Virus record (IMG/VR): IMGVR_UViG_3300033153_013547
Location: 124,001 to 188,000 of that record
DNA: 64,000 nt
Strand: one strand, 5' to 3'
A model generated the notes under the pieces. The model made no database searches, was not told the DNA's origin, and saw only the letters and a program-made list of their open reading frames with translations. Position numbers and translations under genes: made by a program. Position 1 is the stretch's first letter; every line of letters starts with the position of its first letter. Of this stretch, positions 12,238 to 42,625 are shown piece after piece.

Positions 12238-13101
12238 GTGGCAGAAGTAAACCAAGATCCCAATTACCTATATAACAATATATACACAGAGGGCTACGCA
12301 GACAATGGTGCTCAGAGATATCTCAATCCAGCTACGTTCAACTCATTCTCTGGCACTAACATTATAGCCATTTTCAATACTCGTGTTATCACAGAGGTTC
12401 AGGCTATAACCTATTCTGTGAAACGTGAAATAGCCCCTGTATATACCTTTGGAACAGCAGTCCCTCTGTCATTCTCTTCTGGTAAGAGAGGAATAGCAGG
12501 ATCTGTTGTAACAGTAGTATTTGACAGAGAATCTTTGCTGTCAGAAATGGTTGGTGAATGGGGGAATGACAATCCAGATGAGGTCCGCACCAAAATCTTT
12601 GGTAGCGTCACCCAGTTTGGACTAAATCAAGGCCAATATACCATCGATGCAGATGGAGTGGCCACAGCAACTCCTCCTGATATATCAAACATTGGCAACG
12701 AGTTGGTAAACGAAGGTGTCACAGATTATGGCGGAGCAGTTGCCAAGGCCATAACTAACTTTGGTGGAGTAGATCAATTCAACGCCACGTTGAATACGGC
12801 CCTTGGAGGAGACTATGGCAACCTTAATAAGCTGTATGTCAAGTCCAGAGGCTTTGGTGTTGGTGGGATGCTCTATGCTGATCAAATCCCTCCCTTCAAC
12901 ATTACAATCTCGATGCTGAACGAGACCGGCAGAGGTGCCCAATTAGACATTTTGGGTGTCAAAATAATGAACGAAGGACAGGGCTTTTCAGTTGATGACA
13001 TAACAAATGAAAAAGCCTATTCGTTTGTAGCCAGGGAAATTCTCCCGATGCGGCCTCGTGGGTTTGCGGCAGCAAGCTTTGGCGAGACGGTAAGTGCCTG
13101 A
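12238..13101 (+). CDS. Major tail tube protein
   Basis: Directly after the sheath; GGGAGGTGA RBS with GTG start; FSGTNI...EVQAITYSVKRE.APVYTFG...GKRGIAGS and PPFNITI...NEGQGFSVDD tube motifs; followed by a terminator. Confidence 0.85.
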   Translation: MAEVNQDPNYLYNNIYTEGYADNGAQRYLNPATFNSFSGTNIIAIFNTRVITEVQAITYSVKREIAPVYTFGTAVPLSFSSGKRGIAGSVVTVVFDRESLLSEMVGEWGNDNPDEVRTKIFGSVTQFGLNQGQYTIDADGVATATPPDISNIGNELVNEGVTDYGGAVAKAITNFGGVDQFNATLNTALGGDYGNLNKLYVKSRGFGVGGMLYADQIPPFNITISMLNETGRGAQLDILGVKIMNEGQGFSVDDITNEKAYSFVAREILPMRPRGFAAASFGETVSA

Positions 13102-13123
13102 TCAACGATAATAAATAATAATC

Positions 13124-13169
13124 GGCTGGGGTTTTAGTTTTTGTACAAAAGCTCAGCCCCAGCCTTTTT
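13124..13169 (+). terminator. Intrinsic terminator after tail tube gene
   Basis: GGCTGGGG (13124-13131) pairs with CCCCAGCC (13157-13164), with an inner stem AGTTTTTG/CAAAAGCT, followed by TTTTT. Confidence 0.85.
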
Positions 13170-14414
13170 GTGATTGAAATGACAATAGATAAAGACTTTC
13201 CTGGAACCCCCGATCAACGATCATCCTATTCACAAAAACAACAATTAGTTGATCAAAGGGCCAGAGATAGATGGAACAGCACAATGTTTGAACGTGAGGC
13301 TTATGCACTCACTCAATCATTTACAGGCACAGACTGCCTGGCCTATGCTGTTATACCAGCCAGGTTTGAGCATGAGATCACACAATATAGAACTCTACTT
13401 AGCACAACACCTGCAGGAAAAGGTCCTTGGCCCCTTGGCAGCTTACAAACACTCTCATATAGCTCTCATAGACCAGTATTTGGCGTCCAAAGAGCCCATC
13501 ATGTTCGACCCGTTCATTATACAAATGCTACGAGAACCATTGGTGGCACCATGATCTTTAGTGTATTTGATGCCAATGTTCTGGTTGAAATGTACAGAAA
13601 CTTCTACGGAGACATGGAAAGCAAAAGTGCTGAGCAAATAATAGCAGACACTACAAAATCAAGCAAGCCAACAGGAAACTTTTCGGGGGCAGGTGCAGCT
13701 GTTGCAAATGTAGCATACTCAGAAACCAACAAATTTTTAGTAAATGCTGGTGTCAAAGAATTTGCAGAACTTGCAGATGAATTGCCCCCTATAGATATTC
13801 ATATAATGGGAATCAATGAAGTAGGTCACCAAACATATATGGCTCTATTCAATGTGAAATTTTTAGATGAATCAATGACAGTGTCTATCAATGATACTTT
13901 TACAGAACATGTTGTTCAGTTTGTTTGTTCGTCTGTTACTCCATTACAAACACAAACAAGAAGGATCGAGTCAAGAGACAAATTATTTAGTCTAAATGCA
14001 TTTGCCAATAATCAAGAAGAAGCCGCTGCTATAGAAGCAGAGCTTGATGGAGAGCAGCCCATTCCTCCTCCTCAAAATGGAGAGCCCATTCCTCCTCCTC
14101 AAAATGGAGAGCCCATTCCTCCTCCTCAAATTGGAGCAGGGATTGGGGCTATCCAAAAGATAGAGCAAGATCCTGAGCCCGATGCTCTTCCACTGGATCA
14201 TCATTATTATGCCTTGGGAAATGGAACAATAATCAATGTTACAGAACCAGTAGATCTCGATACAATACCATCATCAGAACGAAAAACAGTAGCAGCCAAG
14301 AGAATGAGATATATCGAAATAATTCCTGGGTACTGGAATGACCCCGCTCTTTTGACAGAGCATAACAACATTGGAACAGAAGAGTTTGGGATAGTATTTC
14401 GGGGGACGACCTAA
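13170..14414 (+). CDS. Tube-family paralogue 2 with Pro-rich repeat linker and C-terminal extension
   Basis: SFTGTD, LQTLSYSSHR, RTIGGTMIFSVFD, LPPIDIHI, SMTVSINDTFTE mirror the tube protein motifs. Start may be 13170 (GTG) or 13179 (ATG). Confidence 0.75.
   Translation: MIEMTIDKDFPGTPDQRSSYSQKQQLVDQRARDRWNSTMFEREAYALTQSFTGTDCLAYAVIPARFEHEITQYRTLLSTTPAGKGPWPLGSLQTLSYSSHRPVFGVQRAHHVRPVHYTNATRTIGGTMIFSVFDANVLVEMYRNFYGDMESKSAEQIIADTTKSSKPTGNFSGAGAAVANVAYSETNKFLVNAGVKEFAELADELPPIDIHIMGINEVGHQTYMALFNVKFLDESMTVSINDTFTEHVVQFVCSSVTPLQTQTRRIESRDKLFSLNAFANNQEEAAAIEAELDGEQPIPPPQNGEPIPPPQNGEPIPPPQIGAGIGAIQKIEQDPEPDALPLDHHYYALGNGTIINVTEPVDLDTIPSSERKTVAAKRMRYIEIIPGYWNDPALLTEHNNIGTEEFGIVFRGTT
14057..14136 (+). 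repeat. 27-bp tandem repeat, about 3 copies, encoding (PIPPPQNGE)n
   Basis: GCCCATTCCTCCTCCTCAAAATGGAGA at 14057 and 14084, third copy at 14111 with one substitution. Confidence 0.95.
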
Positions 14415-14417
14415 TCA

Positions 14418-15512
14418 ATGACAGATACTAATGCTATAACAGGGATGAGCTCAACCAGGCTGGATGATCAGATTCGTAGACGTACAATTGAACGAATGAT
14501 CTATCCCAACCCCTATGCTTCTGGTGCTGATGCTTATCTTGTTGTTTCCAAGGGTAATCGCACGATAATTGATGTCATTGCCTTTGAATTTGTTATTGTT
14601 GAGCCAATATTATCGATTGCTGCTTATTATGATTACACCAGAACATCCAAGGCTTATGGTCAACGTAAAATACAAGGCAGCATTACTATCAATGCTACCA
14701 AGCCTGGCTATCTTATTGAATTGATAAATAGTGACATTATTCCTATAACCAATGTATCAGAAGGTGACTTGTTAGAAACAAGTGCTGATCTTGCTACTTA
14801 TAGCAAAACACTCACAGAATCAGGGAACACATTGGCTGTTGAGCTCTGGGGAGAAGCCCCTTGGGCAGGTCAAGGAGTGAGTAAAAACTTGAGGCCAGCC
14901 ATGTCACCCCTAAGCAAAGTAGGGCCTATCAATCCCAATAGTAGCACAGATCTTGTTTTAGTCTATATCCTTGGTAACACAAGGAGATATTATAAACTAA
15001 TAGATATTGACCTTTCTATTTTGAAACATGAGTTTGATCTATCAGGCAAGCCAGTGTTAGAAACCTATCAATTTGAAGCAACAGATATAGACATGAATTT
15101 AACTATGCATGAGGTTTCTAAAACAGAAGCAAGTGTCACTGAGGAAACCATAGAACAGGCAACTGAGCCTAATCCGCCGCCTAATGTCCAAAAGCCTAAT
15201 GTCAAACCTGGGACAACGGAGGGGACAACAGAGGGGGCAACAGAGGGGACAACAGAGGGGGCAACAAACGCTGCTGCCGCCGTTCAAGAGGCGGTGGACG
15301 ATAGTAATCCCATCAATCCTACGGGAATACCAATGCAAACCCTATATAATACTATAGATACTTGGGTACAAATGATGAAGGATCGTGGGCGAACCGCCGG
15401 ATCGCGGTCTAATTGGGAAACTTGTACAAACACACGACTGCGTTCATGCTACGACGATTTAACTCCGCAAGATCAGCATTTGTTATATAGACATTACCAA
15501 CAAGCATGGTAA
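14418..15512 (+). CDS. Tube-family paralogue 3 (possible tube initiator) with repeat linker and small C-terminal domain
   Basis: YASGADA...GQRKIQGSITIN...YKLIDI...ETYQFEATD resembles the tube motifs (GKRGIAGS...DILGV...YSFVARE). Confidence 0.6.
   Translation: MTDTNAITGMSSTRLDDQIRRRTIERMIYPNPYASGADAYLVVSKGNRTIIDVIAFEFVIVEPILSIAAYYDYTRTSKAYGQRKIQGSITINATKPGYLIELINSDIIPITNVSEGDLLETSADLATYSKTLTESGNTLAVELWGEAPWAGQGVSKNLRPAMSPLSKVGPINPNSSTDLVLVYILGNTRRYYKLIDIDLSILKHEFDLSGKPVLETYQFEATDIDMNLTMHEVSKTEASVTEETIEQATEPNPPPNVQKPNVKPGTTEGTTEGATEGTTEGATNAAAAVQEAVDDSNPINPTGIPMQTLYNTIDTWVQMMKDRGRTAGSRSNWETCTNTRLRSCYDDLTPQDQHLLYRHYQQAW
15210..15266 (+). repeat. 12-bp tandem repeat, about 5 copies, encoding G(T/A)TE
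   Basis: GGGACAACGGAG GGGACAACAGAG GGGGCAACAGAG GGGACAACAGAG GGGGCAACA, in frame within 14418-15512. Confidence 0.92.
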
Positions 15513-15540: not shown

Positions 15541-16113
15541 ATGACAGAACCTGACGGAATAATTGAAGAAATCAAGGCTTTTGAGGAAGAAACGGCTGAA
15601 GAACCCGTTGAATCTCCCTCGACACCTGAGGCCGAAATTCCTTCAGCCTCAAATGAAGTGTTTTTGATCTCAGACAAGGAATGGGACAAGGAATCTGCTG
15701 AATTCCTTGAGGAACACAAAGAATTGGTAGATGAAGCCAAGAAAATCTCTCCAGTCTATGTGGTCAAATTCATAGATGGAATTGGTGAACACAAGTGTAT
15801 AATTCGTGGACTAACAAGAAAAGAATATATGCTCTCACAAAATCTATTCCATCCTATAATGAAGCACGGCCAAGAAAAGCTAGATGCCATGACAGAAACC
15901 GAGCGTCTGATCATTGGTATTGAGACCGCACAAGAACAGCAGGATTACACAATCAGAGTAGGTACCGTTTACTGTTCAACTGTTGGGGGCACAATATCAG
16001 AAAATGTACAGCTTGAATCTATTATGACAGCAGGCACAGCCACCCAGCTATATGAAAATATACTGGCAATATCTGGATTTGAAATTGAGCAAAAACAATT
16101 AAAAAAAGCCTAG
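15541..16113 (+). CDS. Tail assembly chaperone (G-like)
   Basis: Acidic N-terminus, CIIRGLTRKEY motif, AAAAGGAG RBS, position between tube and tape-measure genes, ends at a slippery A7 run. Confidence 0.8.
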   Translation: MTEPDGIIEEIKAFEEETAEEPVESPSTPEAEIPSASNEVFLISDKEWDKESAEFLEEHKELVDEAKKISPVYVVKFIDGIGEHKCIIRGLTRKEYMLSQNLFHPIMKHGQEKLDAMTETERLIIGIETAQEQQDYTIRVGTVYCSTVGGTISENVQLESIMTAGTATQLYENILAISGFEIEQKQLKKA

Positions 16114-16526
16114 ACCTCGCTCGTTTTAATCTAGAAAATGATCAGTTAGCAATTCTAGACTGTCTAATAATTGAAGCTTGCAACATGTCCCCAGAAGAAG
16201 TTGGGCAATTGACGGGCGAGGCTTATGCAAATCATGTGGCTATGGCTGAGTTCATTCTCAATGTTCTCAGAGCAGAAAATACTCCAGTAAATACAGGAAA
16301 AGCATTGGTTCCATATAGAACTAATTTTTCCATCAATCTTGATATGTTGCTTGATCCCACGAAAGCTGCACAAGTTCAGGCAGAAAGAGCAAAACAAAAC
16401 CAGAACCAACTGGATCGCAAAGGCAAGCTAAAACAGCAGCACATGAGAATAATCCAGGAAGATCTGGGGCAAGAAGTATTCAAAGATTTTGGTATTGTGG
16501 ACAATGACGAGAATCAGACAAGCTAA
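16089..16526 (+). CDS. Tail assembly chaperone C-terminal extension (T-like part of a GT fusion)
   Basis: The -1 frame is open from 16089 (SLDLARFNLENDQLAILDCLIIEACN) into the called ORF 16185-16526; no clear RBS before 16185. Confidence 0.72.
   Translation, partial: AKTIKKSLDLARFNLENDQLAILDCLIIEACNMSPEEVGQLTGEAYANHVAMAEFILNVLRAENTPVNTGKALVPYRTNFSINLDMLLDPTKAAQVQAERAKQNQNQLDRKGKLKQQHMRIIQEDLGQEVFKDFGIVDNDENQTS
16101..16107 (+). promoter_or_regulatory. Predicted -1 programmed ribosomal frameshift site A_AAA_AAA
   Basis: Zero frame reads TTA AAA AAA GCC TAG. The -1 frame opens after TGA at 16086-16088 and runs without a stop through the slippery site into ATG 16185 and on to 16526. Confidence 0.8.
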
Positions 16527-16542
16527 TAATTATTAGATAGCT

Positions 16543-19500
16543 ATGCGTGAGTATGAAAGTGATCGACTCTATGGTGGGCTAAAAAATCTTGGCATTCTTG
16601 CAAGTGTTGCTACGCTCGGCGTATGGGGATATAGATCTGGTCACGTTGCCAAAGCAGCTAGGTCACTTATACAAACCGGCTTCCCTGCCGTAAGAGCAGG
16701 ATTACAGGCCTTAAAACACACTGAAGAAGCCTATACAGCTTCACACATTGGTATTGGTGATGCTGTCAGTCAGTTTGGCATTCATTACCAGCGTGAATTC
16801 AAAAAGCTACAAAAATTTTATGCCACAAGAACTGCCACGGGCAACCCCCTTGATTCAATAATAGGTGCTGCTACACATCTTCCTTCTCTTTTAGAATCTA
16901 TACAAAGCTTTGTAACAGCCATACCACGGGCAGACTTTAGTCGAATTGGCTTTGAAGAAGCAAAAGGAGACTTAATACGTGATCTTGGCAAAATCAACCC
17001 CAACAGAGTTGTATCAGAAGAATTTGCCTATAGTGTTTATAGGATGCTTGGGCTTGAATCCCAAAAATTCACCCCCATATCTATTGGTGGACTTCATGTA
17101 AATGTAAATCAATTAAGCCAACTCACAACACACCATAAACCCCTGGACACCAGGGCAGTAAAAGCTGCATTTGATACTAGAAAAAAGAACCTCAAAGAAG
17201 ATTTTAGTAGATCTCAATTTGATGGTGGACTAACATTTATGAAGTGGCTACTGGGCGATCCCCAAGCTCGTAGAGCCACGTTATTTGATGTAAGACAAGA
17301 TCTAATCAATAGACTTGGTATTCGTGGCAAAACAGGAGCTGAAATAGACGAGAAGTTAGCAGCATATGTTGATAAAAGCTTAGACACGTTCAAACTGTCT
17401 GAAGATGCCAAAGTCATATTCAACGATCTCTTCTATGATCCCAAGGCAGCCAAAGAAATATTTTTAGATCACAATATCTTCAAAACAACAGAAGGGTTGT
17501 TAGATGCTAGATCAATAACGACATCTGTTGACGATCTTTTAGCCAGCCTCTCTAAACGTTGGAGAATTCCCCTAATCAAATGGAATCCATTTGATATGGT
17601 TCGTTCACAGCTTGCCCTAAAACAAACACAGCCATATGCAGTAGTTGTCACTGGTGATAAAATACCAATGCTGAGTGACAAGGACACAAACGTAATATAT
17701 TCCAAGATAGGTGAAAAACTATACAGATTCAAAAAGAAAGAAGCAGAAAAGTTTAGTTTTGAGCTTGTAGAAAAAATAGATTGGGGAGGTAAGAAAAGAC
17801 CATATAAAGTAATGCACCTTGATCCTTCAGCAGGCACAATGGGTGGCATTGTTGCCAAACGCCTGGGTCTCAGGGGTTATCATTCAGAAGCTCTGGACGA
17901 CATTGTGTTAGGCTGGGCAGCAAGGTTTGTTAAAGGAGGAATAGAGGGGGTTCCCGATCCCTATGTTTTTCTCAAAGAATTAGAACAGGGCAGATTGGTA
18001 GATTATGGTATTACAAGTCAGTCTCTTGAAAATCGATTAGAAAATTTTTGGAAAGGTGGCCTTCTCAATATAAATGTAGTTGCCATAGGCAAGTGGCTCG
18101 AAAAACAACTGGACAACCCCAAGATCACAGCAGAGGCAAGACAGAGCATTGCAGAATATGTTGATAGCCTCGTCTACAAACATCCTAAACAAGACAATAC
18201 ATTACACCTTGCCAGAATGATTGACAAGGCAATGGCAAAAGACACAGCATTTATGAGAATGTTCAAAGAGACAGGTGGTGTAGTCAAAGAACTGCTCAAT
18301 CTTTCTCCAGAACAACAGGAAGCCCGTATTCTTGAGATAGGAATGAAAAATGCTCTCAATATTTCTAAAAGATCTGTTGTAGAAGCAGGTGGTCAAAGAA
18401 CAATTTTAGAACGTATGGAAATGGATTTTGGAGTATGGAGTGTCTTAGAACACTTCAGACTGCTCAATAGTCCTGCCACTAGCATGAATGCCTTTATTAC
18501 TGGTGGACATATTACAGAATCTATGGCCCAGGAGATGGCAAGTCTCAAGATTCTGGATACATATTTGTATAGCATTATGAGAATGGCGCCAGCAAGAAAC
18601 AAGCTTCATTGGATGACACATGAAGGACATCAACTGGCAGCATTTGAAGCATTTAGCAAAACTCCAGATTGGGCAAGAATATTAAGAACACATTATGAAC
18701 CCTTAGACTCAATACGTATTCAAGATGCACTGATAAAGAAAAATGTTACGGCAACAGAAATTTATGAAAACCTAGCAAGGATCAACAAAGCAGCAGATAT
18801 CAGTGAAGTAGCAGGCATACTATATGACACAACCGTCGATGTAGGCGAAATGTTTCTCTCTGCGTTTGGATTCAGGGCCCAAGATTATGGAAGCTCAACC
18901 CTAATGCCACACTATTTTGCCGTAACACTATCAGAACAAATGGAGCTTCTAACGGGAATGATGGGTATTAGGCCATCAAACTCGTTGTGGGCCAAATCAC
19001 CCTTTTCTTTGGGCTTAGCATGGGCAGGTATTGAGGTGGCCTTTGGAACAGCAATCAATAGTTTCAACGCAGCAGATCTTGCCATGAGAGGCGCTGGTTT
19101 CAGGGGCCCCCGTCAATTTGCCATGGATGCTTGGGCCAACGCCAATCTACTCCTGGGTCTTGCTAGTGGCAAACTCAAAGAAACCCAGGATTATTATGCT
19201 GAGGGGGAAGAAGAAATAAGGGCCAGCAGATGGTGGTCATTAGGCAGCACCCCATGGGAAGGTGGAAGAATCAAATTCACTGTTCCCAACCTATACAGGC
19301 GTGTTGGAGTAAGAGACGTATACTACGAACAGAAATGGGGTGGAGAATTACAGGCTTTGGCCCACTCTTCATACCCATCCATACTAACACCATTTGCTCC
19401 AATAAGGCATTTCCTAACAGATAGATATTATTATGAACGTCTTCACCTGAAAGATGAACCTGTTCCACTGACTGGTGAATTGTTTGAACCCTCTGCACCA

Positions 19501-22464
19501 GGTGCTGGCTTACTCAATAACATGCTTGGTTTCATAATGAAACCACAGATAGGCATGCACACTGCAGAAATGCATCAAGCCATGAGATCTGATAGCATGC
19601 TTAGCACTGGTATTGATACAACCCCAAGAACAGGTGTGGATCAAGCAAGAATAAACACATTGTTCAGTCACAGAATAGTCACATCAGGTGCTGCTGGCCC
19701 AAGACTGGGTGCCAATAGACCAATATCTACACCTGATCGTTGGGGAACACAACTGGGAGATGATAGAAATAACAAAAATTTAGAAATGCGTGGAGCAATA
19801 ACAGCAGCCAATTTAGCATCAGGTAGCCAAGGCTCACCTTCACGTTTGGGTATAGCAGACTCTACTAGCCCATTCAATGCTCATCTAATAGACTACACAA
19901 GATCACAAATGGAATTGGCAGGTATTTGGGGTTACTATGGCCAAAACCTCACTGGACTAAACAACAGAATCTATAGAATGGAAACTGGTAGAGCAGGATA
20001 TTCCATATCAGATGCCATACAAAAAGCAAATGTAGGATCATGGTTGCCTATTCCAATGTTTGGGGAAATAATAACAGAGGTGCCAAGAAGAATTGTTGGT
20101 GGTGCCCCTAAGGATTATGTAATAAATCCTTTGAGAAATACTATGCCTACGTGGCTTCCTGACAGATTCAAATATGGGAATCAATATAACCGTTTGTCAT
20201 ATGGCCAATATAGGCTTCCGTCGCCAACTTACGAAGCACTGAACAAAGTAGATAGAGAAAGGATTGGTGGATCAACTATTGGCTTACCAATCAATGAATT
20301 GGCTGAAAAAATAGCTGGATTTGACAGAACAAAGATGGGGGCAACAGCTGTAACAGGCACTTTGATGCATAAAGCAATGTTACAAGAATTATTTCAAATG
20401 GGCAAGGTAATTGCTGTTGAAAAAGCAGTAGATGATCAGCAGCACAACATGTATGGATACATAGATGCCATAGTAGAAATAGGTGGACAACCAATGGTTG
20501 TTGATCTAAAAACTACTAATGCTATGAAGTTGCAAAGAATGAGAGAAGGAGAAATTCCTGAAGTATACAAGTCTCAGATCAATTATTATATGTGGGCTGC
20601 CAATGCCTCTATGGGTGCTTTGTATGTTGTAAATCGTGATAACCCAGCAGATAAAATGTTTTGGACAATGAAATTTGACGAAGGCAGACTACTTGACGAC
20701 TTCATCAAATTAGAAAAGGCCAGGGCAATGGTTAGAAGGCTCATTGAACAAGGCTATATTTCTCCATATGAAAGCTATAGGGACTTGGATAGGGCTAAAA
20801 TTTTGGCTGATGTTGCCCCTTATTCTGACGAATTTTCAGACACATTTGAAAGACTTTTGGCTGAGCCAGAAAAAGACATAACCAGACAAGAAGAACTTAA
20901 CAAACTAAAACTGAAAGTGAATAGGATCAAGTCAGGAGATACTTTTGACGAATATTTGTGGAGAAACCCTACAAAGGTCGTTGATGTTCAGAGCATGATG
21001 GTTGAAGATGATAATACCATAACCATGACATATAATTTCAGAGGCAAGAAAAGAACTCATACAGGTGTTCTTGCTGGGGCTATGCCAATAGAAGGTTATG
21101 AAGTGGCATTCAACAAAGCTCTCAAGCAACTAATGCCCATTGAAGCACTAGAAAACGTTAGAATAATGCCTGATGATCCTAAATCAAAAATCATCGTATT
21201 TACCAAGGGAGGTAATAGTGTAGCACAACAATTAGTGGACCTTCATCTTGGTTTGCCCGCCACAACAGGCAGACAAGAAGATAGAGAGGCTTTAATGAGA
21301 CATCAGGGATCATATGCTTGGGAATGGTTCACTCACTTAGATTCTCCTATGCACACCAAATTTGGGAAAGCAGATGCCTGGGAAGAATATAAAAGAAGAG
21401 TTGTATATGGCACAAGATATACATCTCCATTCACCCGTCCTATAAAATATACAGGACACATGTTAGAAGCCCTTGCTGGACACGACAACCCTATAGAAGC
21501 AGCCTTTGGTGGAGCCATGGTTGGAGCACTTATTGGTAGCACAGCAGGTAGATTAGCAGTGGGTGGCATGGCAAAAGGAGCAATAGCAGGTAGTATTTTG
21601 GCAGTTGCAATTTCTGGTGGACGTCAACTCATTGATCTTTTCACTGGTAAGGCTATGGTTCCACCAGAAGAAAGAAAATCAAGAGAGATAGAGGATTATG
21701 TGGACAAACTTGAATATGTCAAGTTTAAAAGGCTCTTTGAATCTACTTCCTTGATGTTAGAAAGAGCAGGAATCAATCTGTCTAAAATAGCCAATATGGT
21801 TATGTCTGGTAAGACAGTAGTTGATGAAGTAATGCAACAATTCCCTAACTATGGTCCTTTGATCAAAAGAGGGCTGTATTATAAACAAGAATATGAAAGC
21901 ACTATGTTTGCATTGAGTAGAGCCAGTGATATGAGAACTATTCTTAGAGCTTTACCCAAAAGAGAAAGACAATATTATTTGGCTTTCAAAAACTATCACC
22001 AACATAATAAAAAACAAATATTGAAACTAGCATCTCCATCACTGAGAAAGGCTCTGGCTATCACGTGGGGAGAAGACATGCCAGAGGGGGAATCTATAGA
22101 CAAATACTTCCAGTCTCATTGGCTACCAGAGCCCAGTTGGACAGGATGGCAACCAGATACATCTATCAGTGATTATAAGGTAGTTTTGGCAAGAGAAGAG
22201 GGGGTTGAATACCATGAATTGGGCATGTGGGAAGACTCAGTACAAAGAACCAGGATGTGGCAAGCTCAACCACGTATGCGTCATGGAACTGGCGTCAATA
22301 TGCAAAAAAGGATTAGAGAATTGTTAGGTAGAAACGGCCTGTCTGATATAAGTATTCAGATCTTACAGTCAACATCAGACAAAGACATTGATATAAACTT
22401 CACTATTCGGGAGGATGCATCCAGAAGTGCTGCAGTAAAATATGCGGCTAGTCTGGAAATGTAG
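16543..22464 (+). CDS. Tape-measure-position protein with PD-(D/E)XK nuclease and SNase-like domains
   Basis: Directly follows the chaperone frameshift pair; mostly helical with hydrophobic G/A-rich segments. GTLMH...GYIDA...VDLKT...QINYYM nuclease motifs at about 20356-20592; SNase-like segment at about 20968-21258. Confidence 0.75.
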   Translation: MREYESDRLYGGLKNLGILASVATLGVWGYRSGHVAKAARSLIQTGFPAVRAGLQALKHTEEAYTASHIGIGDAVSQFGIHYQREFKKLQKFYATRTATGNPLDSIIGAATHLPSLLESIQSFVTAIPRADFSRIGFEEAKGDLIRDLGKINPNRVVSEEFAYSVYRMLGLESQKFTPISIGGLHVNVNQLSQLTTHHKPLDTRAVKAAFDTRKKNLKEDFSRSQFDGGLTFMKWLLGDPQARRATLFDVRQDLINRLGIRGKTGAEIDEKLAAYVDKSLDTFKLSEDAKVIFNDLFYDPKAAKEIFLDHNIFKTTEGLLDARSITTSVDDLLASLSKRWRIPLIKWNPFDMVRSQLALKQTQPYAVVVTGDKIPMLSDKDTNVIYSKIGEKLYRFKKKEAEKFSFELVEKIDWGGKKRPYKVMHLDPSAGTMGGIVAKRLGLRGYHSEALDDIVLGWAARFVKGGIEGVPDPYVFLKELEQGRLVDYGITSQSLENRLENFWKGGLLNINVVAIGKWLEKQLDNPKITAEARQSIAEYVDSLVYKHPKQDNTLHLARMIDKAMAKDTAFMRMFKETGGVVKELLNLSPEQQEARILEIGMKNALNISKRSVVEAGGQRTILERMEMDFGVWSVLEHFRLLNSPATSMNAFITGGHITESMAQEMASLKILDTYLYSIMRMAPARNKLHWMTHEGHQLAAFEAFSKTPDWARILRTHYEPLDSIRIQDALIKKNVTATEIYENLARINKAADISEVAGILYDTTVDVGEMFLSAFGFRAQDYGSSTLMPHYFAVTLSEQMELLTGMMGIRPSNSLWAKSPFSLGLAWAGIEVAFGTAINSFNAADLAMRGAGFRGPRQFAMDAWANANLLLGLASGKLKETQDYYAEGEEEIRASRWWSLGSTPWEGGRIKFTVPNLYRRVGVRDVYYEQKWGGELQALAHSSYPSILTPFAPIRHFLTDRYYYERLHLKDEPVPLTGELFEPSAPGAGLLNNMLGFIMKPQIGMHTAEMHQAMRSDSMLSTGIDTTPRTGVDQARINTLFSHRIVTSGAAGPRLGANRPISTPDRWGTQLGDDRNNKNLEMRGAITAANLASGSQGSPSRLGIADSTSPFNAHLIDYTRSQMELAGIWGYYGQNLTGLNNRIYRMETGRAGYSISDAIQKANVGSWLPIPMFGEIITEVPRRIVGGAPKDYVINPLRNTMPTWLPDRFKYGNQYNRLSYGQYRLPSPTYEALNKVDRERIGGSTIGLPINELAEKIAGFDRTKMGATAVTGTLMHKAMLQELFQMGKVIAVEKAVDDQQHNMYGYIDAIVEIGGQPMVVDLKTTNAMKLQRMREGEIPEVYKSQINYYMWAANASMGALYVVNRDNPADKMFWTMKFDEGRLLDDFIKLEKARAMVRRLIEQGYISPYESYRDLDRAKILADVAPYSDEFSDTFERLLAEPEKDITRQEELNKLKLKVNRIKSGDTFDEYLWRNPTKVVDVQSMMVEDDNTITMTYNFRGKKRTHTGVLAGAMPIEGYEVAFNKALKQLMPIEALENVRIMPDDPKSKIIVFTKGGNSVAQQLVDLHLGLPATTGRQEDREALMRHQGSYAWEWFTHLDSPMHTKFGKADAWEEYKRRVVYGTRYTSPFTRPIKYTGHMLEALAGHDNPIEAAFGGAMVGALIGSTAGRLAVGGMAKGAIAGSILAVAISGGRQLIDLFTGKAMVPPEERKSREIEDYVDKLEYVKFKRLFESTSLMLERAGINLSKIANMVMSGKTVVDEVMQQFPNYGPLIKRGLYYKQEYESTMFALSRASDMRTILRALPKRERQYYLAFKNYHQHNKKQILKLASPSLRKALAITWGEDMPEGESIDKYFQSHWLPEPSWTGWQPDTSISDYKVVLAREEGVEYHELGMWEDSVQRTRMWQAQPRMRHGTGVNMQKRIRELLGRNGLSDISIQILQSTSDKDIDINFTIREDASRSAAVKYAASLEM

Positions 22465-22469
22465 CAATC

Positions 22470-25400
22470 ATGGCAATATACATTCCAACTTCTTCTACTG
22501 TATATGCAAGCGAAGACCTATTGCGGTTACCTGCCATGCTTGGAACAGAAGATGTTTTTGCCAAGTATCTTAGCAATATAACTGACAGAAAACATACTAT
22601 TACACTTTTTGTGATAGAAAGTGACAATCTACCACAAAAAAGGCTGGAAATTGTTTTGGAAGGAACAAAGATACGGGTTTATACAGAAACAACCACTACA
22701 CCAATCATTTTTTCCAATACAACGTTTACCAAAATGGAACCGTTTATTCGTAATGGCAAATTCGAAACCGCAGGACGTAACGTGGAAGTTAGAATACTGG
22801 CTCGTGATCTAGCCATTCTCATAGAAGAAACCAAATACCAGTCTGGTTCAGCATTCATACCTGATTCAATAGTGCAAATGGTCACAGCAGTTCAAAGAAG
22901 GACAGATCCAGAAGGAACGATAATCAACCTTATCACCGCTCTCGAAGAAAAAATGGCTCAAGTGCCCATAGGAAGAATAGGAGCCCAATTACCACGAACA
23001 CCAGGATTACAAGCGGGAGAGCATTTTATTACAGTTCTTGACGATCTAAAAAAGAGAGATGTGCTAAACGAAGGAATTAGAGAACTATCAGAAGCACGAA
23101 TCAGTGGAATAGCCAGAGGACAAACACCCGATATGGCTCAAAAAAAAACTCAAGCAGTCACTGCCATAGTTACCAAAGATTATCTGGATAGATTTTTTAG
23201 ACAAATAGTAGGTGGTGGCAAAAAAACTGTTACAGAAGAATTCGAAGAATTTGTCAAAACCAATAGGGTTGCCCAAATAATTGAAGATCTTGTAGATTGG
23301 CATGGCTGGATCACTGCCTTCTATGGTTATACAGGGCCTACTCAAGAGATTATAGAAACAGCCTTTGAAGAAGCTGCAAAGGAATACATTGGCATTGTAG
23401 GCCTACTATCTCCCGAGGAAAGAAGTAATATAAAGACCAGATTCATTGCCAAAGTAATGGATGGGATCAAAGAAAGAAAACAAGCAAATTTGCCATATGA
23501 AGTTAGTGTGCGTCTTAAGAAACTCAAATCCAGTGGGGCAGTAATAGATGTTGGCAAATTTGCCTTGTCAGCCCCAGATCAAATGACCAAATCCTTGGGA
23601 GCCAGAAATCTTAGTGATGCTTTTGGAACAACAAGAGTTCCTTCTGGGCTCAAAGAACACGTTAATCAGATTCTTGCTGCCCCACTACAGATCAGTAAGC
23701 CACTATACAGACAATACACACCTTACCAAGATCTAATATCCCTGATTGATCAACTAAAATCCATTCCTAAGTCTGGTGTTATTCCTAGAATATTAGACTT
23801 TGAGGGGTGGATTGGAGACAACATTACCCTCACAACCCAACTGGGTGTTCTGGATGTTGCTGATTGTGCCAAGAACTTCACAGAGATTACCAAAGCAGGC
23901 TCTCAGTTTATGATGTCCAGCAGACCTCATGGCATTCATGGTAAAGTAGATGAGCAAACAGCTACTTATTTGAAAGATGAGTTGCTCAAAATGTGGAGCA
24001 AAGCCAAGGCATGGTCACTTGATCCTAGAGAATCTCATTTCAACCCCAACGACAAAAACAGCAAACTGCTCATGAATCTTGGTAGAATGATTATTGCTGG
24101 TTCAGAAGATATGGAAACACAAGAACTCAGAGCTGCTACCATGGCCCAACTAAATGTTGAGGGCATTAGTGCAGACACATTATTAGACTGGTATGAAAAA
24201 GCACTTCATCAAAAAATGAGACACCACAAGTTTGAAGGCAAAGGAACAAAAGCAACACTCTCTGAATTTCAAGAGCTCATCAAAACCACATTCAAAGATG
24301 GTAGGGTTTTCATGCACAACCCAGAGGGTGCTGATATTACCCACATATACAATCTTTTAGAAAAAGGATCAGATCCTATAGCCTATGCAGAAGCCAAAAA
24401 ATTAGTGCAAAGCAAAACCACAGATAGTATTGCTATATTTCAGTATTTACAAGAATTGGCCATGGTTAGGGGGGACAAGTCTTGGGAAGATATGGCTTCA
24501 ACGTCTTTTGCCATGAACAATTTAGTCAAGAAGTATGAAAGCCTTATGGGGGGATTGACCACTGCAGATCTCCACCTGCTTGGTAAAAACGATGCTTATG
24601 CTGCAGGTCGACTCATGATTATCAGTCTGAATGCAGCAATGAACGACACCACCGCACATAGTATGGCTGATCAAGTATTTGCCAAAAGCGTTACATCTGA
24701 AACAATAACCAATAACTTACGATTTGTAGCAGAACTTTTTGATGAAAATCTTGCAAAAAACAAAAAACTCTTTACAAACATAGAAGATTGGATCAGAGTG
24801 GCCAGTGGTATTGATCCCTCAGAAGATTTGGGCTCTAAATTAGTTCATGAAGGAATTGAGGTTTATAGTATAGTAACCAAGCCTCTAAAAAGATCAGATC
24901 TTGAGCTATGGGCACAAAGATTCGATGTGACTATGGAGACCCCTGTCGGACTGGAACGACTGGAAATAAAACCACCACGAGGGCTACGTTTAGGACAAGT
25001 AGTTACTGATGATCCATCTGTATGGAGGGCGGGCACGGCGCTCAAAACACTTCTCCAAATGGACGCAAAAACCAATGAAATTCTATTTAGCTTCACAGAT
25101 ATGAATGGCATCCAGCATAAATTTAGGGCCAAAAACATATTAGCTCTAAACAACTTACTGGCTCAAGGAGGCTTTGAAACCACAACAGAAAAAGGAATGT
25201 CTAGATGGATCAACACACTCATGGACGATGCTCGAAGACTATTCGACAATCTCACTGGTTCTTTCAATGAAGATCCAAACATGATAGGACGAATAATTGA
25301 AATACATAGCAACAACATAAGAAACATTATAGATCATTCAACAAGAGACCCACAAATTGCGGGTATACTTGATAAAACATCAGAATTACTTGCTGCAATA

Positions 25401-26756
25401 AAATCTGGTGAACCACTATTTGACACAACCAATCCTCTAGGACATACTTTTATGCAGAACATGTTTGATCTACACAAGCTTGACTGGTTGGAGGGAGGCA
25501 GCAAGTCCATTGCAGAAGCAGTAATATTTGTGGCACAACACAAAAACAATCTTGAAGTTGTTGACACTATGCTAGGAAACCAGATGCTTTTACATCATCT
25601 AACCAAGAGCATGTATACTGGTGATGCTAGAAGTTTTCTAATGTATGATCAAGAATTAGCCGATAGATTAGGAAAATCAATGGAGGAAATTAGTTTTTAC
25701 AAATATAGCCCCCTGGCTGAAGGCACAGTGCTTGACAATGCTGTTTTGAGAATTGGGGACACAGATTCCTCGGTCATAGTATCAATGAATGCTCATAAAA
25801 CCCACGACGACATCAGGGCAATTTTGAGCAGAACCACAGACAAACATTCCAAGGCAGCAAGATTCTTGGCAGATGAATTTTTGGGTGAAACAATAGATCA
25901 AAAAACCTATGCACTGTCTAATAAAACAGAAAGAAAAGTGTTAGGAGACAGAATAGCAGCACAAATAATCAAGGAATCACAAGAGATCAATACCTTCAGA
26001 AGAACACATTCTGAATTGTTATACGAACCAACTATCGCTCCTGGCGTAGCCACGGGCAAAGGAAGAAGCGCCTGCGGAAGGGCTATTTTTGATGTTATCC
26101 ACGATGAAGAATTCATAGGCAGAATAGTGGGGAAAGGCCACACACTGTGGGAAGAACTCAAAATAGCTTCAGACACAGGTAGATTTAGAAACTTCCCAGA
26201 TGCCTTGATGCAATACGGTAATTCTATTATAGACACTATATCCGTGGCAGCAGAAGAAAGTGGACGTCTTAGAGACAAGACTTCAGCAGCCAACATAATT
26301 ATGGCATTCAATAATATGGGCATATTTGAACCTGCAAGTGTCGAGAATCGTTTCTTTCCACAAATGCCAAAAATACAGGCTGATATAAGTAAAACTGTTG
26401 TAAAGAACCTGGGTCGCATGGGAATGGCAGCAGCAGCAATTCCTCTAATTGCATTAGGTGCTGCTAGGCCCCCACTTAGAGGACTAGAAGAATTACCAGT
26501 AGATGAAGCATTTGATCCAGATTTTCTGCAAGGCAAAACATCAGCTGCTGGACCACCAATTGTTATTCAGAAACCACTTGGAATTACAATAAATATTGAT
26601 GCCAAGGGCACAGAAGGCAGATATGATTTGTCTAATATAATGAATAGCTTGAGACACACCATGGGAATAAACGCCGAACAGCGCGTGACAACGTCGTTTA
26701 ACAAGCTCTCTGATATTGAAATTGAGAGGCTCATGGAAATGGAGGCCATAGATTAA
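22470..26756 (+). CDS. Large protein with DEDDh (DnaQ-like) 3'-5' exonuclease motifs, probably virion-associated
   Basis: ExoI ILDFEG (23790-23807), HGI, ExoII FMHNPEGAD (24309-24335), DSIAIFQYL, ExoIII LHLLGKNDA (24570-24596), in the expected order with insertions. Confidence 0.65.
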   Translation: MAIYIPTSSTVYASEDLLRLPAMLGTEDVFAKYLSNITDRKHTITLFVIESDNLPQKRLEIVLEGTKIRVYTETTTTPIIFSNTTFTKMEPFIRNGKFETAGRNVEVRILARDLAILIEETKYQSGSAFIPDSIVQMVTAVQRRTDPEGTIINLITALEEKMAQVPIGRIGAQLPRTPGLQAGEHFITVLDDLKKRDVLNEGIRELSEARISGIARGQTPDMAQKKTQAVTAIVTKDYLDRFFRQIVGGGKKTVTEEFEEFVKTNRVAQIIEDLVDWHGWITAFYGYTGPTQEIIETAFEEAAKEYIGIVGLLSPEERSNIKTRFIAKVMDGIKERKQANLPYEVSVRLKKLKSSGAVIDVGKFALSAPDQMTKSLGARNLSDAFGTTRVPSGLKEHVNQILAAPLQISKPLYRQYTPYQDLISLIDQLKSIPKSGVIPRILDFEGWIGDNITLTTQLGVLDVADCAKNFTEITKAGSQFMMSSRPHGIHGKVDEQTATYLKDELLKMWSKAKAWSLDPRESHFNPNDKNSKLLMNLGRMIIAGSEDMETQELRAATMAQLNVEGISADTLLDWYEKALHQKMRHHKFEGKGTKATLSEFQELIKTTFKDGRVFMHNPEGADITHIYNLLEKGSDPIAYAEAKKLVQSKTTDSIAIFQYLQELAMVRGDKSWEDMASTSFAMNNLVKKYESLMGGLTTADLHLLGKNDAYAAGRLMIISLNAAMNDTTAHSMADQVFAKSVTSETITNNLRFVAELFDENLAKNKKLFTNIEDWIRVASGIDPSEDLGSKLVHEGIEVYSIVTKPLKRSDLELWAQRFDVTMETPVGLERLEIKPPRGLRLGQVVTDDPSVWRAGTALKTLLQMDAKTNEILFSFTDMNGIQHKFRAKNILALNNLLAQGGFETTTEKGMSRWINTLMDDARRLFDNLTGSFNEDPNMIGRIIEIHSNNIRNIIDHSTRDPQIAGILDKTSELLAAIKSGEPLFDTTNPLGHTFMQNMFDLHKLDWLEGGSKSIAEAVIFVAQHKNNLEVVDTMLGNQMLLHHLTKSMYTGDARSFLMYDQELADRLGKSMEEISFYKYSPLAEGTVLDNAVLRIGDTDSSVIVSMNAHKTHDDIRAILSRTTDKHSKAARFLADEFLGETIDQKTYALSNKTERKVLGDRIAAQIIKESQEINTFRRTHSELLYEPTIAPGVATGKGRSACGRAIFDVIHDEEFIGRIVGKGHTLWEELKIASDTGRFRNFPDALMQYGNSIIDTISVAAEESGRLRDKTSAANIIMAFNNMGIFEPASVENRFFPQMPKIQADISKTVVKNLGRMGMAAAAIPLIALGAARPPLRGLEELPVDEAFDPDFLQGKTSAAGPPIVIQKPLGITINIDAKGTEGRYDLSNIMNSLRHTMGINAEQRVTTSFNKLSDIEIERLMEMEAID

Positions 26757-29700
26757 TGACACAGACACCTTCACACATCAGTATTGAAAATCTACACAGG
26801 CAAGTAGTAGATAAAGTCATTGCACTGGATATGCATAGCATTTTACACACACTTGAAGAATCAGGAGCCATTGGGGGTGGCCTTACTCAAGAAGAACAGC
26901 TCAATACCATTCTCAATGCTGTAAAAAAGACGTCTTGGGGACAAGGCATCTCTCTTGAAAAACTATCCACATCACAAACTTCAGCATTGACGGGGCCATA
27001 TGACAGAAACAGGGTGGTTGCAGCTATTACTGCATCTGCTGAAGCATCTTCTATAATGAAGATAGTATTTAATCTCCAAAATTACAAGAGCAAAATCACA
27101 GGCAAGGAATTGTTTGATCAAGATATGATAGGGCCAAGGCTGTTGTTTTTATTAGAAAAACCACCTTCTGATGTGGAATCTATTGCCAAAACCTTTTCTA
27201 CATCTGACCAGCTGTCTAATAGAAACACTATTGCTGCAATGTTAAATACCTTCAACTACCTGGCAGCAATAGACAAAGTACATAGTGACTGGGATAAAAG
27301 GTTGGCAGAAGGGGAAACCCCCCAACAATTACAACGAACTGTCAATGATTTAGTAAATAAGATAAAAACCGACGTTAATCGAGCCAACGAATATAATCTT
27401 GATGCACAACATCTTGCAACGAGAATGCGTAAAAAAGATACATTACAGCAATCTCTGAAAGTAGTAAGTGATCCAAAACTCATCCGGCTTGAATCAGACA
27501 TTAGACAGGGCATTAAAGCAAAGCTTTCTGGAGACACCACTGGCAATGCTGTTTTGCTAATAGCTGATGTTGATGCTAAGGGCAATCAAGTAGGAATGTA
27601 TAAATCCATGAGGGAATTTTTGACCTCTTATGGATTCAATCAGCCAGAAATTATTGCAGAAGCTCTGGATATACAAATACAGCATCCACAAAACTTTGAT
27701 CAAGCAACAAAAGCACTGAAGGCTACAGATAAACTTCCTGAATTTCTTTTCAAGTTGAAAAAGGGCGACAGAGAAAGGGTGTTTAGGGGCAGGCTTGGTC
27801 CTGCTCCAGTTAGACACCCCCAAATAGACATAACGAAAGGTTTTCCCTACAATCTTGTCTTGGCTGCCCATCCTGATAGCACAATACCTGGTGGTAAAGC
27901 AGCCCAGCGAGCCACAAGTGGGATAGGAGTTAATCAGGTATACGTGAGTCTTCTAAACTTAGCCAGAATAAACGCAGACTATGATGGGGATACAATCATA
28001 AATTACATAAATACCAATCTAAAATCTGAGATACTTCAATACATAAAAGAACATGGTAAAAAAGAGAGCCCTGGGCTAGTATTAGTTGGGGCCATGGATA
28101 TGATAATTAAATCCCTGGCATTCGGTGAGGAAACCAAGAAAGAACTGATAAGTGCTGGAATGCTACGCTCCAAGCTGAGAGAACGAGTAGGCGTAATGGC
28201 TCGCCAAAGAGCAAACTTTGTATCCAAAAGAATCCTCAAAAAGTCTTATATCCCAGGACAAACAATGGTATTAGAGATTGGGGGCATCAAATATGGATTG
28301 GAAGCTAATCCTGCTCAGGGAATAAAAGAAATAGAAGTCCTCATAACTGAAACAATTATGAAGAATTTTGACAAAAACATGAATCCTGCAAAAGCATTTG
28401 TCAGAGCAGAAGAATTGATACATCAAGAGGGGGATATTTATGTTTTTGATCATCTTGCCAACAAAAAACTTTCTGGAATAGAAGTTGTAAAGTGGCAAGA
28501 GAAAAATATAAACCGTGCTCTCATTGAAGACAATCTACTGAAATGGGGATTGCACCTAAGTGATCGTGTAAAGAGACTGGGCGCAGACAATGCTCTCATA
28601 AAACAATTCATGGCAAAATTGGCAGACACAAAAGATCCAGACAATTTCTTAAGATCTATGGAAGCCATAAATGACATAGCACAAGATATTATCAGCAGAG
28701 GAGATGTTTCTGAAGAAACAGTCAGCAAAATTATAAAAGAACATGCCAGAAAAACGGGCATTGCTTTTGAAGCACACAAAATACTTAAAGGGGGAGTAGG
28801 GGAAATTGGAGTGATACAGTATGCGTTCTTTGAACACGTACACAATAACATCAAATATTTGTCCAATATTGGTGCAGAACAATTAACAGATCTCAAAAAA
28901 TTAGCTGATTTCTTTGAGGTAATGGCACAAATTCCGTTAGAAGCAAAGCACAAAACAGGTGGTTCTTTCAAAATGATAGCCCACATCCTTCGCACGGTTC
29001 TCAAGGGTGGAGGTGTCAATGTTAAGGACACGGCTCAAGACATAACAAACATTCTAATGCGTGGAAAGATGCCAGAAGTACTCGCAAGTGTCACGGCTAC
29101 TGCTTATCCGGTTGGCCAAATTTGGGAAGGCGAGGGTTTTACTCTACATCGTACAAACCTAAGAAACTGGGTAGAAGAAGCTATTCGTGTTTTGGCAAAT
29201 CCGCGTATATCCACAGCAATACAAGAACAAATTAGCAACAAATCAGCATGGACAGGGGGAGCGGGAGCAGCGGCAAGGGTTGCGGGCGGCATGGAAAGCA
29301 CTATTATTGAACTTACTGGAACCAAAGATATTACCCAAGCATTTGAGGGAGCACTAAGCATCAACCCAAAAGACCCAGGCGCCGTTGATGTTGTCAAAGA
29401 ACTTCACCAACTTAGTACTTCTAGTTTTAAAAGACGTGACTACGACAGTTTTACTCGCAAGCCCAACGAATTAGCAACCATCATTTCTGAAAAAGCAAAA
29501 AAGAATGTTTATGAAATTGCTCGTGTTACAGACAAAAGTGGCATATCTAAATTAGAACTAAGACAAATCTATGATCCTAACAAACCAGAAACCTTCGACG
29601 CCATAGCCTCGCGGCTACCTGCTGGAGTAGTTCCAGACGAAGACACAATACAATTTGTTATAAATGATAGGGTGCGAAAGCAAATACAAAATGGAAGAGC

Positions 29701-42160: not shown

Positions 42161-42625
42161 ATGACAAATGACTTAGCACTTGATTCAAATGGTGATATTT
42201 ATCTAACTAATAATAGACAAATGGTGGATTGCTCCAACTATCCAGCTGCCAAACCCTACTACGATCCAAGATACAGGAATCTCATCCAAAACATCTTTAT
42301 TTCTTTACAAACTTTGAGGGGAGAGTGGCCATCCAGTAGCCTCATAGGAAATTCTTCTGAAAATTTTTTGGGCAGACTCTATACTTATGATCTTCATAAG
42401 GCTATTGTCAATGATATTACATCTGCCATCACTAATATACTTCCATCTAATGCTACTGCAGAGATCAAGGCAGTGCCAACCAGTGCAAATGCCTGTAATA
42501 TAACCATCAAAATTGTTGTTAATAACACAAGAATTGTTTGCATGCAATTTCCTTTTAACTTAGTAGATGGACTTGTAATCACAGGAGAAGGATCTTCAAT
42601 GTTCACACATGGTGATATTTCATGA
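42161..42625 (+). CDS. gp25-like baseplate wedge / sheath initiator
   Basis: MTNDLALDSNGDIYL...LIQNIFISLQTLRGEW...IGN pattern; start taken at ATG 42161 (GGAG upstream) instead of 42116. Confidence 0.75.
   Translation: MTNDLALDSNGDIYLTNNRQMVDCSNYPAAKPYYDPRYRNLIQNIFISLQTLRGEWPSSSLIGNSSENFLGRLYTYDLHKAIVNDITSAITNILPSNATAEIKAVPTSANACNITIKIVVNNTRIVCMQFPFNLVDGLVITGEGSSMFTHGDIS

Follow-up and report, generated by a model that had tools for sequence, protein, structure and literature searches.

A nuclease domain inside a giant tail-module protein

The window analysed here is the stretch of 64,000 nucleotides at positions 124001-188000 of a 261,124-bp IMG/VR virus record (IMGVR_UViG_3300033153_013547). 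Its subject is an open reading frame (ORF) of 1973 amino acids (aa) at 16543-22464, referred to as the carrier, which holds a PD-(D/E)XK nuclease domain of ~ 170 aa (aa 1240-1409; 20260-20769). The features of the carrier and its neighbouring ORFs from the sheath to the hub lie on the plus strand. A preliminary description had placed an intact-looking nuclease of the RecB/Cas4-like type at 20350-20730, inside a protein in the tape-measure position. The domain does lie there, although the full fold is slightly wider than that extent. The five motifs listed in the preliminary description are all present in the frame of the carrier, between 20356 and 20592: GTLMH (aa 1272-1276; 20356-20370), EKAV (aa 1293-1296; 20419-20430), GYIDAIV (aa 1305-1311; 20455-20475), VVDLKT (aa 1319-1324; 20497-20514), and QINYYM (aa 1345-1350; 20575-20592).

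Sequence-based and structure-based methods agreed on the identity of the domain, and the match is well beyond chance level. In the profile search of the domain region that the preliminary description had proposed, Pfam PDDEXK_1 (PF12705) matched aa 1240-1460 with 27.7 bits (E=3.2e-6), above its gathering threshold of 22 bits; against the whole 1973-aa protein the score was 21.2 bits, just below the cut-off. PHROG 1706, annotated as 'CRISPR/Cas associated', was the best of five matching PHROG families, with E=2.2e-14; the other four are phage exonuclease/Cas4-type families as well. When a profile of 19 homologous domain segments (alignment A1) was compared with the PDB, it matched the Cas4 protein SSO0001 (4ic1) with E=1.2e-4, and the two were aligned through the D, (D/E)xK, and QxxxY motifs. 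The AlphaFold2 (AF2) model calculated on alignment A1 had a predicted local distance difference test (pLDDT) score of 87. The preliminary description had named the absence of a restriction-endonuclease-like fold as evidence that would speak against it; such a fold was predicted. Foldseek searches with the AF2 model gave 37 matches at E≤1e-3, among them MGME1 (9e-8), lambda exonuclease, LHK-Exo, and SSO0001 (about 1e-6; ~ 6e-7 for the first two), RecE, Dna2, Exo5, and the AdnAB nuclease domains; E values across this set ran from 1e-7 to 1e-3. In VIA-align, the closest structures were LHK-Exo (Z 15.2; 163 aa, 3.2 Å), lambda exonuclease (Z 14.1), and SSO0001 (Z 13.8), with 150-170 residues aligned; for the two exonucleases the alignments cover 163-171 residues at 3.2-3.5 Å. 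Every one of the 39 top VIA-align matches (Z 7.5-15.2) was a nuclease of the RecB/lambda-exonuclease-like clade. As modelled, the domain is a genuine RecB/lambda-exonuclease-type PD-(D/E)XK fold with its catalytic residues intact. When the phage's own genome was searched with the domain, no further copy turned up.

With aa 1200-1500 of the carrier as the seed, a word search returned 29 proteins of 1176-3437 aa, encoded on contigs of up to 262 kb. Together with gp145 of Bacillus phage 0305phi8-36 they form a family of 30, of which 21 members carry the nuclease domain. The putative active site comprises seven residues. H1276 (20368-20370) belongs to the GTxxH motif and is kept in 18 of the 21 domain-bearing homologs. 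The conserved acidic residue E1293 (20419-20421) is Glu in 19 of them, including all 18 in which the full set of seven is intact. D1308 (20464-20466), the first catalytic Asp of the hhD motif, aligns with the Asp of 'GRADAII' in SSO0001, and the (D/E)xK motif formed by D1321, Leu, and K1323 (20503-20511) aligns with 'EIK' of the same protein; at its acidic position, D and E alternate among homologs. Q1345 and Y1349 (20575-20589) form the RecB-type QxxxY motif, as seen in the profile alignment and in the comparison of homologs. All seven residues (H1276, E1293, D1308, D/E1321, K1323, Q1345, and Y1349) are kept in 18/21 proteins, including gp145, at an overall identity of 25-35%. Their survival across such divergence argues for a working metal-dependent phosphodiesterase. 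The preliminary description was also right about the missing Cys cluster of Fe-S Cas4 proteins: the cysteine count of the carrier is 0 of 1973 aa, so it holds no Fe-S cluster.

In tblastn searches against deposited phages, the carrier matched gp145 (ORF145) with E=3e-47 over aa 880-1958, at 27% identity. The only deposited phages matched were 0305phi8-36 and a few related jumbo phages. In GenBank, gp145 bears the note 'virion structural protein; identified as virion protein by mass spectrometry', and the virion status of the gp145 family derives from that single note. Judged by similarity and synteny, the carrier is an ortholog of this ~ 2000-aa virion protein. Absence from the virion was the second finding that the preliminary description had set against itself, and here the carrier proved homologous to a protein detected in virions by mass spectrometry.

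The carrier starts 17 bp past the second of two ORFs in the tail-chaperone position, and gp145 is likewise placed after gp143/gp144. To this extent the tape-measure position given in the preliminary description holds. However, in 0305phi8-36, the one relative that has been studied, the tape measure protein (TMP) was assigned to the next gene, gp146 (orf146), from the tail length. This makes gp145 an additional protein that lies after the chaperonins and before the TMP (PMC2147016); that comparative genomics paper contains no mention of ORF145 or of a nuclease therein. No TMP family matched the carrier in Pfam (E≤1), PHROGs, or NCBIfam. Its TMP-like traits are the giant size, the lack of cysteine, and conserved Gly-rich hydrophobic segments toward the C-terminus. 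Because gp146 is the assigned TMP in the relative, two giant ORFs occupy the TMP slot of the window, and no TMP model matched, we do not read the carrier as the tape measure itself; it is probably a second tail-interior protein.

Several further features were recognized along the carrier. A hydrophobic segment near the N-terminus (aa 12-30; 16576-16632) was seen in the translation, and its gp145 counterpart (aa 31-51) was flagged by a Kyte-Doolittle scan. The conserved scaffold of the gp145 family (aa 880-1239; 19180-20259) consists of blastp blocks common to all 29 homologs. It ends in 'RLP..YEALN', directly before the point at which the nuclease domain is inserted, as seen from the junction sequences. 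The domain is followed by a helical linker (20770-20949) with the near-invariant 'DRxxILADVAPYS', in which ILADVAPYS begins at aa 1420 (alignment A1 columns). This is the best-conserved signature of the gp145 family and is kept also in members that lack the nuclease. Further on are Gly/Ala-rich hydrophobic segments resembling the membrane-insertion segments of tape measures (aa 1649-1693; 21487-21621), whose position is conserved across the family, and a conserved C-terminal region defined by blastp blocks (aa 1700-1973; 21640-22461). For aa 1590-1973, the ESM Atlas gave no usable match.

Between the linker and the Gly/Ala-rich segments, aa 1470-1600 (20950-21342) occupy the slot in which most homologs have an OB domain resembling staphylococcal nuclease (SNase). 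In those homologs the ~ 110-aa segment follows the linker helix, and its profile (alignment A2) matches thermonuclease in the PDB with E=1.1e-5 over nearly the whole OB fold. One homolog, P0015, scored 21.1 bits with Pfam SNase (PF00565; cut-off 21). The segment in the window protein is only weakly similar, with 2.9 bits against the homolog OB profile, and the module is absent from five deep-branching homologs. In SNase, the Ca2+-binding and catalytic residues are D21, D40, E43, and R87 (SNase numbering). Since the equivalent columns of alignment A2 are not conserved, the module is probably a non-catalytic OB domain, either binding nucleic acid or structural.

Tail-module gene order and neighbouring genes

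The carrier, delimited from the ORF list and its translation, is embedded in a tail module. Upstream lie the tail sheath (9513-12209; phrog_16991, E=1.5e-47), which matches gp139, and, by blastp, the tail tube (12238-13101; gp140 counterpart), a tube paralog (13170-14414; gp141 counterpart), and an ORF with weak similarity to gp142 (14418-15512). They are followed by the two small ORFs (15541-16113 and 16185-16526) that, by position only, fill the slot of the tail chaperonins gp143/gp144. Downstream, two giant ORFs of 1428 aa (22470-26756) and 1858 aa (26756-32332) occupy the gp146 tape-measure slot between the orthologs of gp145 and gp147. The latter is the 2641-aa baseplate hub with a phage lysozyme domain (32319-40244; PF00959, E=2.5e-14; phrog_20474, E=5.9e-71; blastp). 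A gpJ-like baseplate protein (42622-43407) is the counterpart of gp151 according to gene order. This order, from the sheath through the tube, tube paralog, gp142-like ORF, chaperone-position ORFs, carrier, TMP slot, and hub to the gpJ-like protein, is common to the window and 0305phi8-36 (blastp). A 220-kb metagenomic relative has a matching gene order, followed by a gene of 3716 aa. From these sequence comparisons, the window derives from a jumbo myophage of 261 kb that belongs to the lineage of Bacillus phage 0305phi8-36.

The genomic setting bears on the stage at which the nuclease might act. An enzyme of the assembly phase would work in the infected cell, during morphogenesis or DNA maturation. 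When heads and tails are joined it might, for instance, trim the DNA that sticks out of filled heads, or it might resolve packaging intermediates; it would then merely be carried in the virion. The carrier is a late structural gene of the tail operon, and virion-associated nucleases of the restriction-endonuclease fold with a packaging role are known, such as the head completion protein of the T4 gp4 type (PMC7824862). The gene, however, belongs to the tail module and not to the head or packaging module, and an entire clade of the family does without the domain. Moreover, myophage tails assemble independently of DNA. We therefore regard an assembly-phase role as very unlikely.

Some observations on the neighbouring genes should be recorded. 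Both tube-family ORFs (12238-14414) matched PHROG 9206, whose label 'major head protein' is apparently misleading in view of the blastp and synteny results, which identify a tail tube and its paralog. The lysozyme domain of the hub ORF (32319-40244) lies at aa 1758-1891, and this ORF overlaps the preceding one by 14 nt. The TMP slot is divided in the window, where the first ORF ends at 26756, the start of the second. It is a single gene in relatives: that of 0305phi8-36 encodes 2537 aa, and that of the relative L003 encodes 3716 aa. Cysteine is absent from the 1973-aa and 1858-aa ORFs and from gp145 and gp146, makes up 0.1% of the 1428-aa ORF, and reaches 0.5-0.6% in the hub. Searches of Pfam, PHROG, and NCBIfam gave no family match for either giant ORF of the slot (22470-32332).

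The 1858-aa ORF (26756-32332) has the motif 'NADYDGD' at about aa 426-432, preceded by a hydrophobic strand. The motif resembles NADFDGD, which binds Mg and is universal among two-barrel RNA polymerases (RNAPs), and it recalls the TMP-fused virion RNAP of phage P23-45. No relatives of this ORF were found by word search or among 1.84 billion protein representatives, and comparison with PDB sequences gave only chance-level matches (E 0.5-1.4), including pertussis toxin S1. PF00623 did not match the ORF, and neither gp146 nor the TMP of L003 contains NADYDGD. The single-sequence AF2 model was unusable (pLDDT 39), whereas the ESM Atlas gave a weak lead to Rpb1 domain 2 (score 0.77). A tail-borne RNA polymerase is thus a weak lead at this ORF. 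Outside the window, a 555-aa ORF (G000:C1:25723-27390, minus strand) contains a clear RNAP beta'-like double-psi barrel ('RNPVLHR...CDFDGDG'), which PF00623 matches above its cut-off (E=3.7e-9). Its flanking ORFs measure 553 and 558 aa. A multisubunit RNA polymerase is therefore probably encoded by the phage itself.

Distribution and history of the nuclease domain

In nine family members the 'RLPGxGYEALN' block joins the near-invariant 'DRFKILADVAPYS' helix after ~ 12 residues. Read from these junctions, the difference is a clean deletion of the size of the domain. For the family tree we used the scaffold, leaving out the columns of the nuclease and of the OB domain. The nine domain-less proteins formed one clade, to which the window protein is the sister (support 0.93), and the domain was found in every other deep branch. 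In a further three proteins (P0018, P0019, and P0021), at least three of the seven catalytic residues have been lost together. In the simplest history suggested by these patterns, the domain was acquired anciently, lost once, and decayed three times independently. Given the deletion in one clade and the decay of the active site in three lineages, the nuclease function appears accessory; the whole distribution fits a catalytic function that is selected but accessory.

Taken alone and compared with deposited phages, the domain is closest in sequence to free-standing phage proteins named 'RecB/Cas4 family exonucleases' (24-30% identity, E 4e-6 to 6e-3). Such proteins are a likely evolutionary source of the domain. 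Automated annotation of the family includes a precomputed PF12705 assignment on one homolog and the name 'endonuclease YncB' on two.

One family member, P0017 (3437 aa), contains an intein-like Hint domain at aa 1496-1773 (PF14890 E=1.7e-6, below the cut-off), just upstream of its nuclease domain at aa 1802-2030. The proximity of an intein, together with the behaviour of the domain as a clean unit of insertion and deletion, would be expected of a mobile in-frame nuclease of the homing type, or of an intein remnant, without use to the phage. In the window protein, however, Pfam revealed no Hint or splicing domain and there is no Cys. The ~ 170-aa insert is also too small to accommodate both Hint and nuclease. 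Furthermore, the domain is present in all deep branches and has diverged together with the scaffold at 25-35% identity, which fits ancient vertical inheritance with a single loss. We rejected the assignment as an intein or homing element on the lack of a Hint domain, the small insert, and the restriction of the intein to P0017, upstream of its nuclease; a selfish insertion in the wider sense is extremely improbable.

The three decayed proteins also bear on whether the domain needs to be catalytic at all. It might instead be a DNA-end-binding or structural module, for example one that holds or caps the genome terminus lying in the tail, like T4 gp2, or an exapted Cas4-like virion protein like TP1 of TTV1; the 'catalytic' residues would then bind metal and DNA without turnover. 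P0018, P0019, and P0021 keep the fold with a ruined active site, the adjoining SNase-like OB domain is likewise devoid of catalytic residues, and a Cas4-derived virion protein has a precedent (PMC4625639). On the other hand, the seven residues are kept in 18/21 proteins despite ~ 70% divergence, with D and E alternating at the acidic position of (D/E)xK, as would be expected of catalysis. The clade that deleted the domain kept the scaffold, and the domain is thus not needed structurally. In TP1, moreover, the active site is said to have been lost, unlike in the domain described here. Overall, we consider a non-catalytic role unlikely.

Possible role and comparison with known systems

The reading that we prefer, while holding it at slightly less than an even chance, is that of a virion-delivered, DNA-end-dependent exonuclease acting where DNA enters the cell. 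The carrier would travel in the tail interior with the tape measure and would leave the virion at infection. Its Gly-rich hydrophobic segments (aa 1649-1693) may help to form or line a membrane conduit. The nuclease module would then come to lie where the channel opens into the cytoplasm, and could act there as an exonuclease on DNA ends. Its likeliest substrate would be the leading end of the linear phage genome as it enters, and other DNA ends in the cell would be less likely. Resection of the 5′ strand would leave a 3′ single-stranded tail, which would be recombinogenic and a poor substrate for AddAB/RecBCD.

The choice of substrate follows from the relatives of the domain. The top structural relatives, namely lambda exonuclease, LHK-Exo, RecE, Cas4, MGME1, Dna2, Exo5, and the AdnAB/AddAB/RecB nuclease domains, are all end-dependent exonucleases or nucleases of single-stranded DNA (ssDNA). 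A tail-interior protein is expected in few copies per virion. Because the relatives need a free end or ssDNA, and because of this low copy number, a single DNA end is favoured over the circular host chromosome. In its most specific form, the proposal is that a tail-interior 'pilot' protein with a lambda-exonuclease-like enzyme at the channel mouth resects the leading end of the genome on entry, before gene expression. The end would thereby become recombinogenic, allowing circularisation or concatemerisation via terminal repeats, and invisible to AddAB/RecBCD. We put forward this version as a speculative one that is rather unlikely to be correct in full.

The same considerations apply to an attack on the host or on competitors, in which the delivered nuclease would degrade the DNA of the host, a plasmid, a prophage, or a co-infecting phage, or the nucleic-acid part of a host defence, in place of the phage's own DNA end; this was the first option of the preliminary description. 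Such a role is compatible with intact and conserved catalytic residues, and the patchy loss and decay of the domain are typical of accessory arms-race functions. Homologs hold a second, SNase-like nucleic-acid-binding module alongside the nuclease, and the related BtI1 element has an SNase domain on its hub protein (PMC2147016). Nevertheless, an intact circular chromosome offers neither the free end nor the ssDNA that the structural relatives require, and a few copies per virion would be too few for bulk degradation of host DNA. In the tail module we saw no evident partner that would confer sequence specificity or nick DNA. In our judgement, this role is improbable, though it deserves consideration.

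Several points weigh against a nuclease delivered to the entering genome. Mass spectrometry shows the presence of gp145 in the 0305phi8-36 virion and no more than that; a place in the tail lumen and entry into the cell are presumed. The carrier matched no tape-measure or ejection-protein family in Pfam or NCBIfam, and the N-terminal regions of 24 family members contained no Pfam domain. Several copies of a folded domain of ~ 20 kDa would fit only tightly into a tube of ~ 4 nm. The domain has been lost or inactivated in 12/30 relatives and is therefore not essential for genome delivery; the same pattern fits a host-dependent benefit of the arms-race type. A three-copy complex prediction for a homotrimer like that of lambda exonuclease scored 0.00, which is no answer and weighs neither way. 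Finally, the 'direct terminal repeat' of the record is an exact 114-bp overlap, and the true genome ends are thus not given by it. It has the look of an overlap from circular assembly more than that of a physical repeat at the termini. In 0305phi8-36 the repeat is 6.5 kb, according to PMC3357382.

If the carrier works as a delivered exonuclease of the recombination/repair type, DNA-end processing would join the capabilities that a virion brings into the cell before gene expression. The most specific version would amount to a virion-delivered start of recombination combined with end protection, which is not known to have been described for any phage. It would bear on how large linear phage genomes survive the end-dependent nucleases of their hosts. 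The idea is directly testable, since one phage of the gp145 family, 0305phi8-36, is cultured on a non-pathogenic laboratory host and has virion proteomics. The natural variants in which the site has decayed or the domain is deleted are ready comparison groups.

Among known enzymes, lambda exonuclease and LHK-Exo (alkaline exonuclease, YqaJ-type) are the best structural matches, and the D...(D/E)xK...QxxxY layout is common to them and the window domain. The window domain, however, is only 9-18% identical to these proteins and is embedded in a 1973-aa virion protein, whereas they are free recombination enzymes. Pfam YqaJ (PF09588) gave 14.9 bits (E=0.03) with the domain, below its cut-off of 22. 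No gene for a single-strand annealing protein (SSAP) stands beside the carrier, whose neighbours are tail genes; this neighbourhood was the part of the genome examined for such a gene.

The Cas4 proteins SSO0001 (4ic1) and Pcal_0546 (4r5q) are the best sequence-profile match among solved structures. Every protein belonging to the Cas4 family binds an Fe-S cluster via four cysteines (PMC5704561). We rejected membership of this family for the window domain, which has no Cys, reached 16.3 bits with NCBIfam cas4 (TIGR00372; cut-off 65), and is flanked by tail genes, with no cas or CRISPR context. The stand-alone RecB/Cas4-family exonucleases of Thermus phages phiFa and phiYS40, Mycobacterium phage Tonenili, and Rhodococcus phages differ in being small, free-standing, and unfused to a virion protein.

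The closest counterpart of the entire protein is gp145, an ortholog of the whole carrier at an equal gene position, with the same nuclease domain and all seven catalytic residues. It differs by an insertion of ~ 60 aa between the D and DxK motifs and by a clearer SNase-like OB domain, and it is annotated just as a 'virion structural protein'. In the same lineage, the hub protein of the 0305phi8-36-like element BtI1 bears a staphylococcal nuclease domain (PMC2147016). There, too, a nuclease-fold domain is joined to a tail-tip or tail-interior protein, and the gp145 family has its SNase-like OB domain. The BtI1 carrier (the hub) and fold are different, though, and the SNase-like module of the gp145 family lacks catalytic residues.

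A Cas4-like PD-(D/E)XK fold has also been recruited into a virion protein in TTV1, whose nucleocapsid protein TP1 derives from a Cas4 nuclease (PMC4625639). In the window domain, the catalytic residues are intact and conserved. The catalytic site of TP1 has reportedly been inactivated. The polyvalent injected proteins described by Iyer et al. in 2017 are said to carry several effector domains, usually with a processing metallopeptidase. We rejected such a multi-effector architecture for the carrier family, as the 24 N-terminal regions contained no Pfam domain, the window protein has only PDDEXK_1, and one homolog has SNase in addition.

The closest functional analogue is gp96 of Thermus phage P23-45, a TMP fused to a virion RNA polymerase that is delivered into the cell at infection (10.1101/2022.12.01.518664). 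Like gp96, the carrier is a giant and probably tail-interior protein with the domain of a DNA-acting enzyme. In gp96, the RNAP is at the N-terminus of a bona fide siphophage TMP, whereas here an exonuclease-type domain occupies the C-terminal third of a protein beside the myophage TMP slot. Delivery has been shown for gp96, and for the window carrier we infer it. In searches of open-access papers, we found no published description of a PD-(D/E)XK, RecB, or Cas4-type domain in a protein of the tape-measure region, in an ejection protein, or in gp145. The enzymes known as parts of tail-interior or ejected phage proteins are mostly cell-wall hydrolases, to which the RNA polymerase of P23-45 gp96 was added more recently. 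The fusion of enzymes to tail or ejection proteins is thus an established theme, and the new element, as judged from sequences and models, is the conserved exonuclease-type domain in a tail-module protein.

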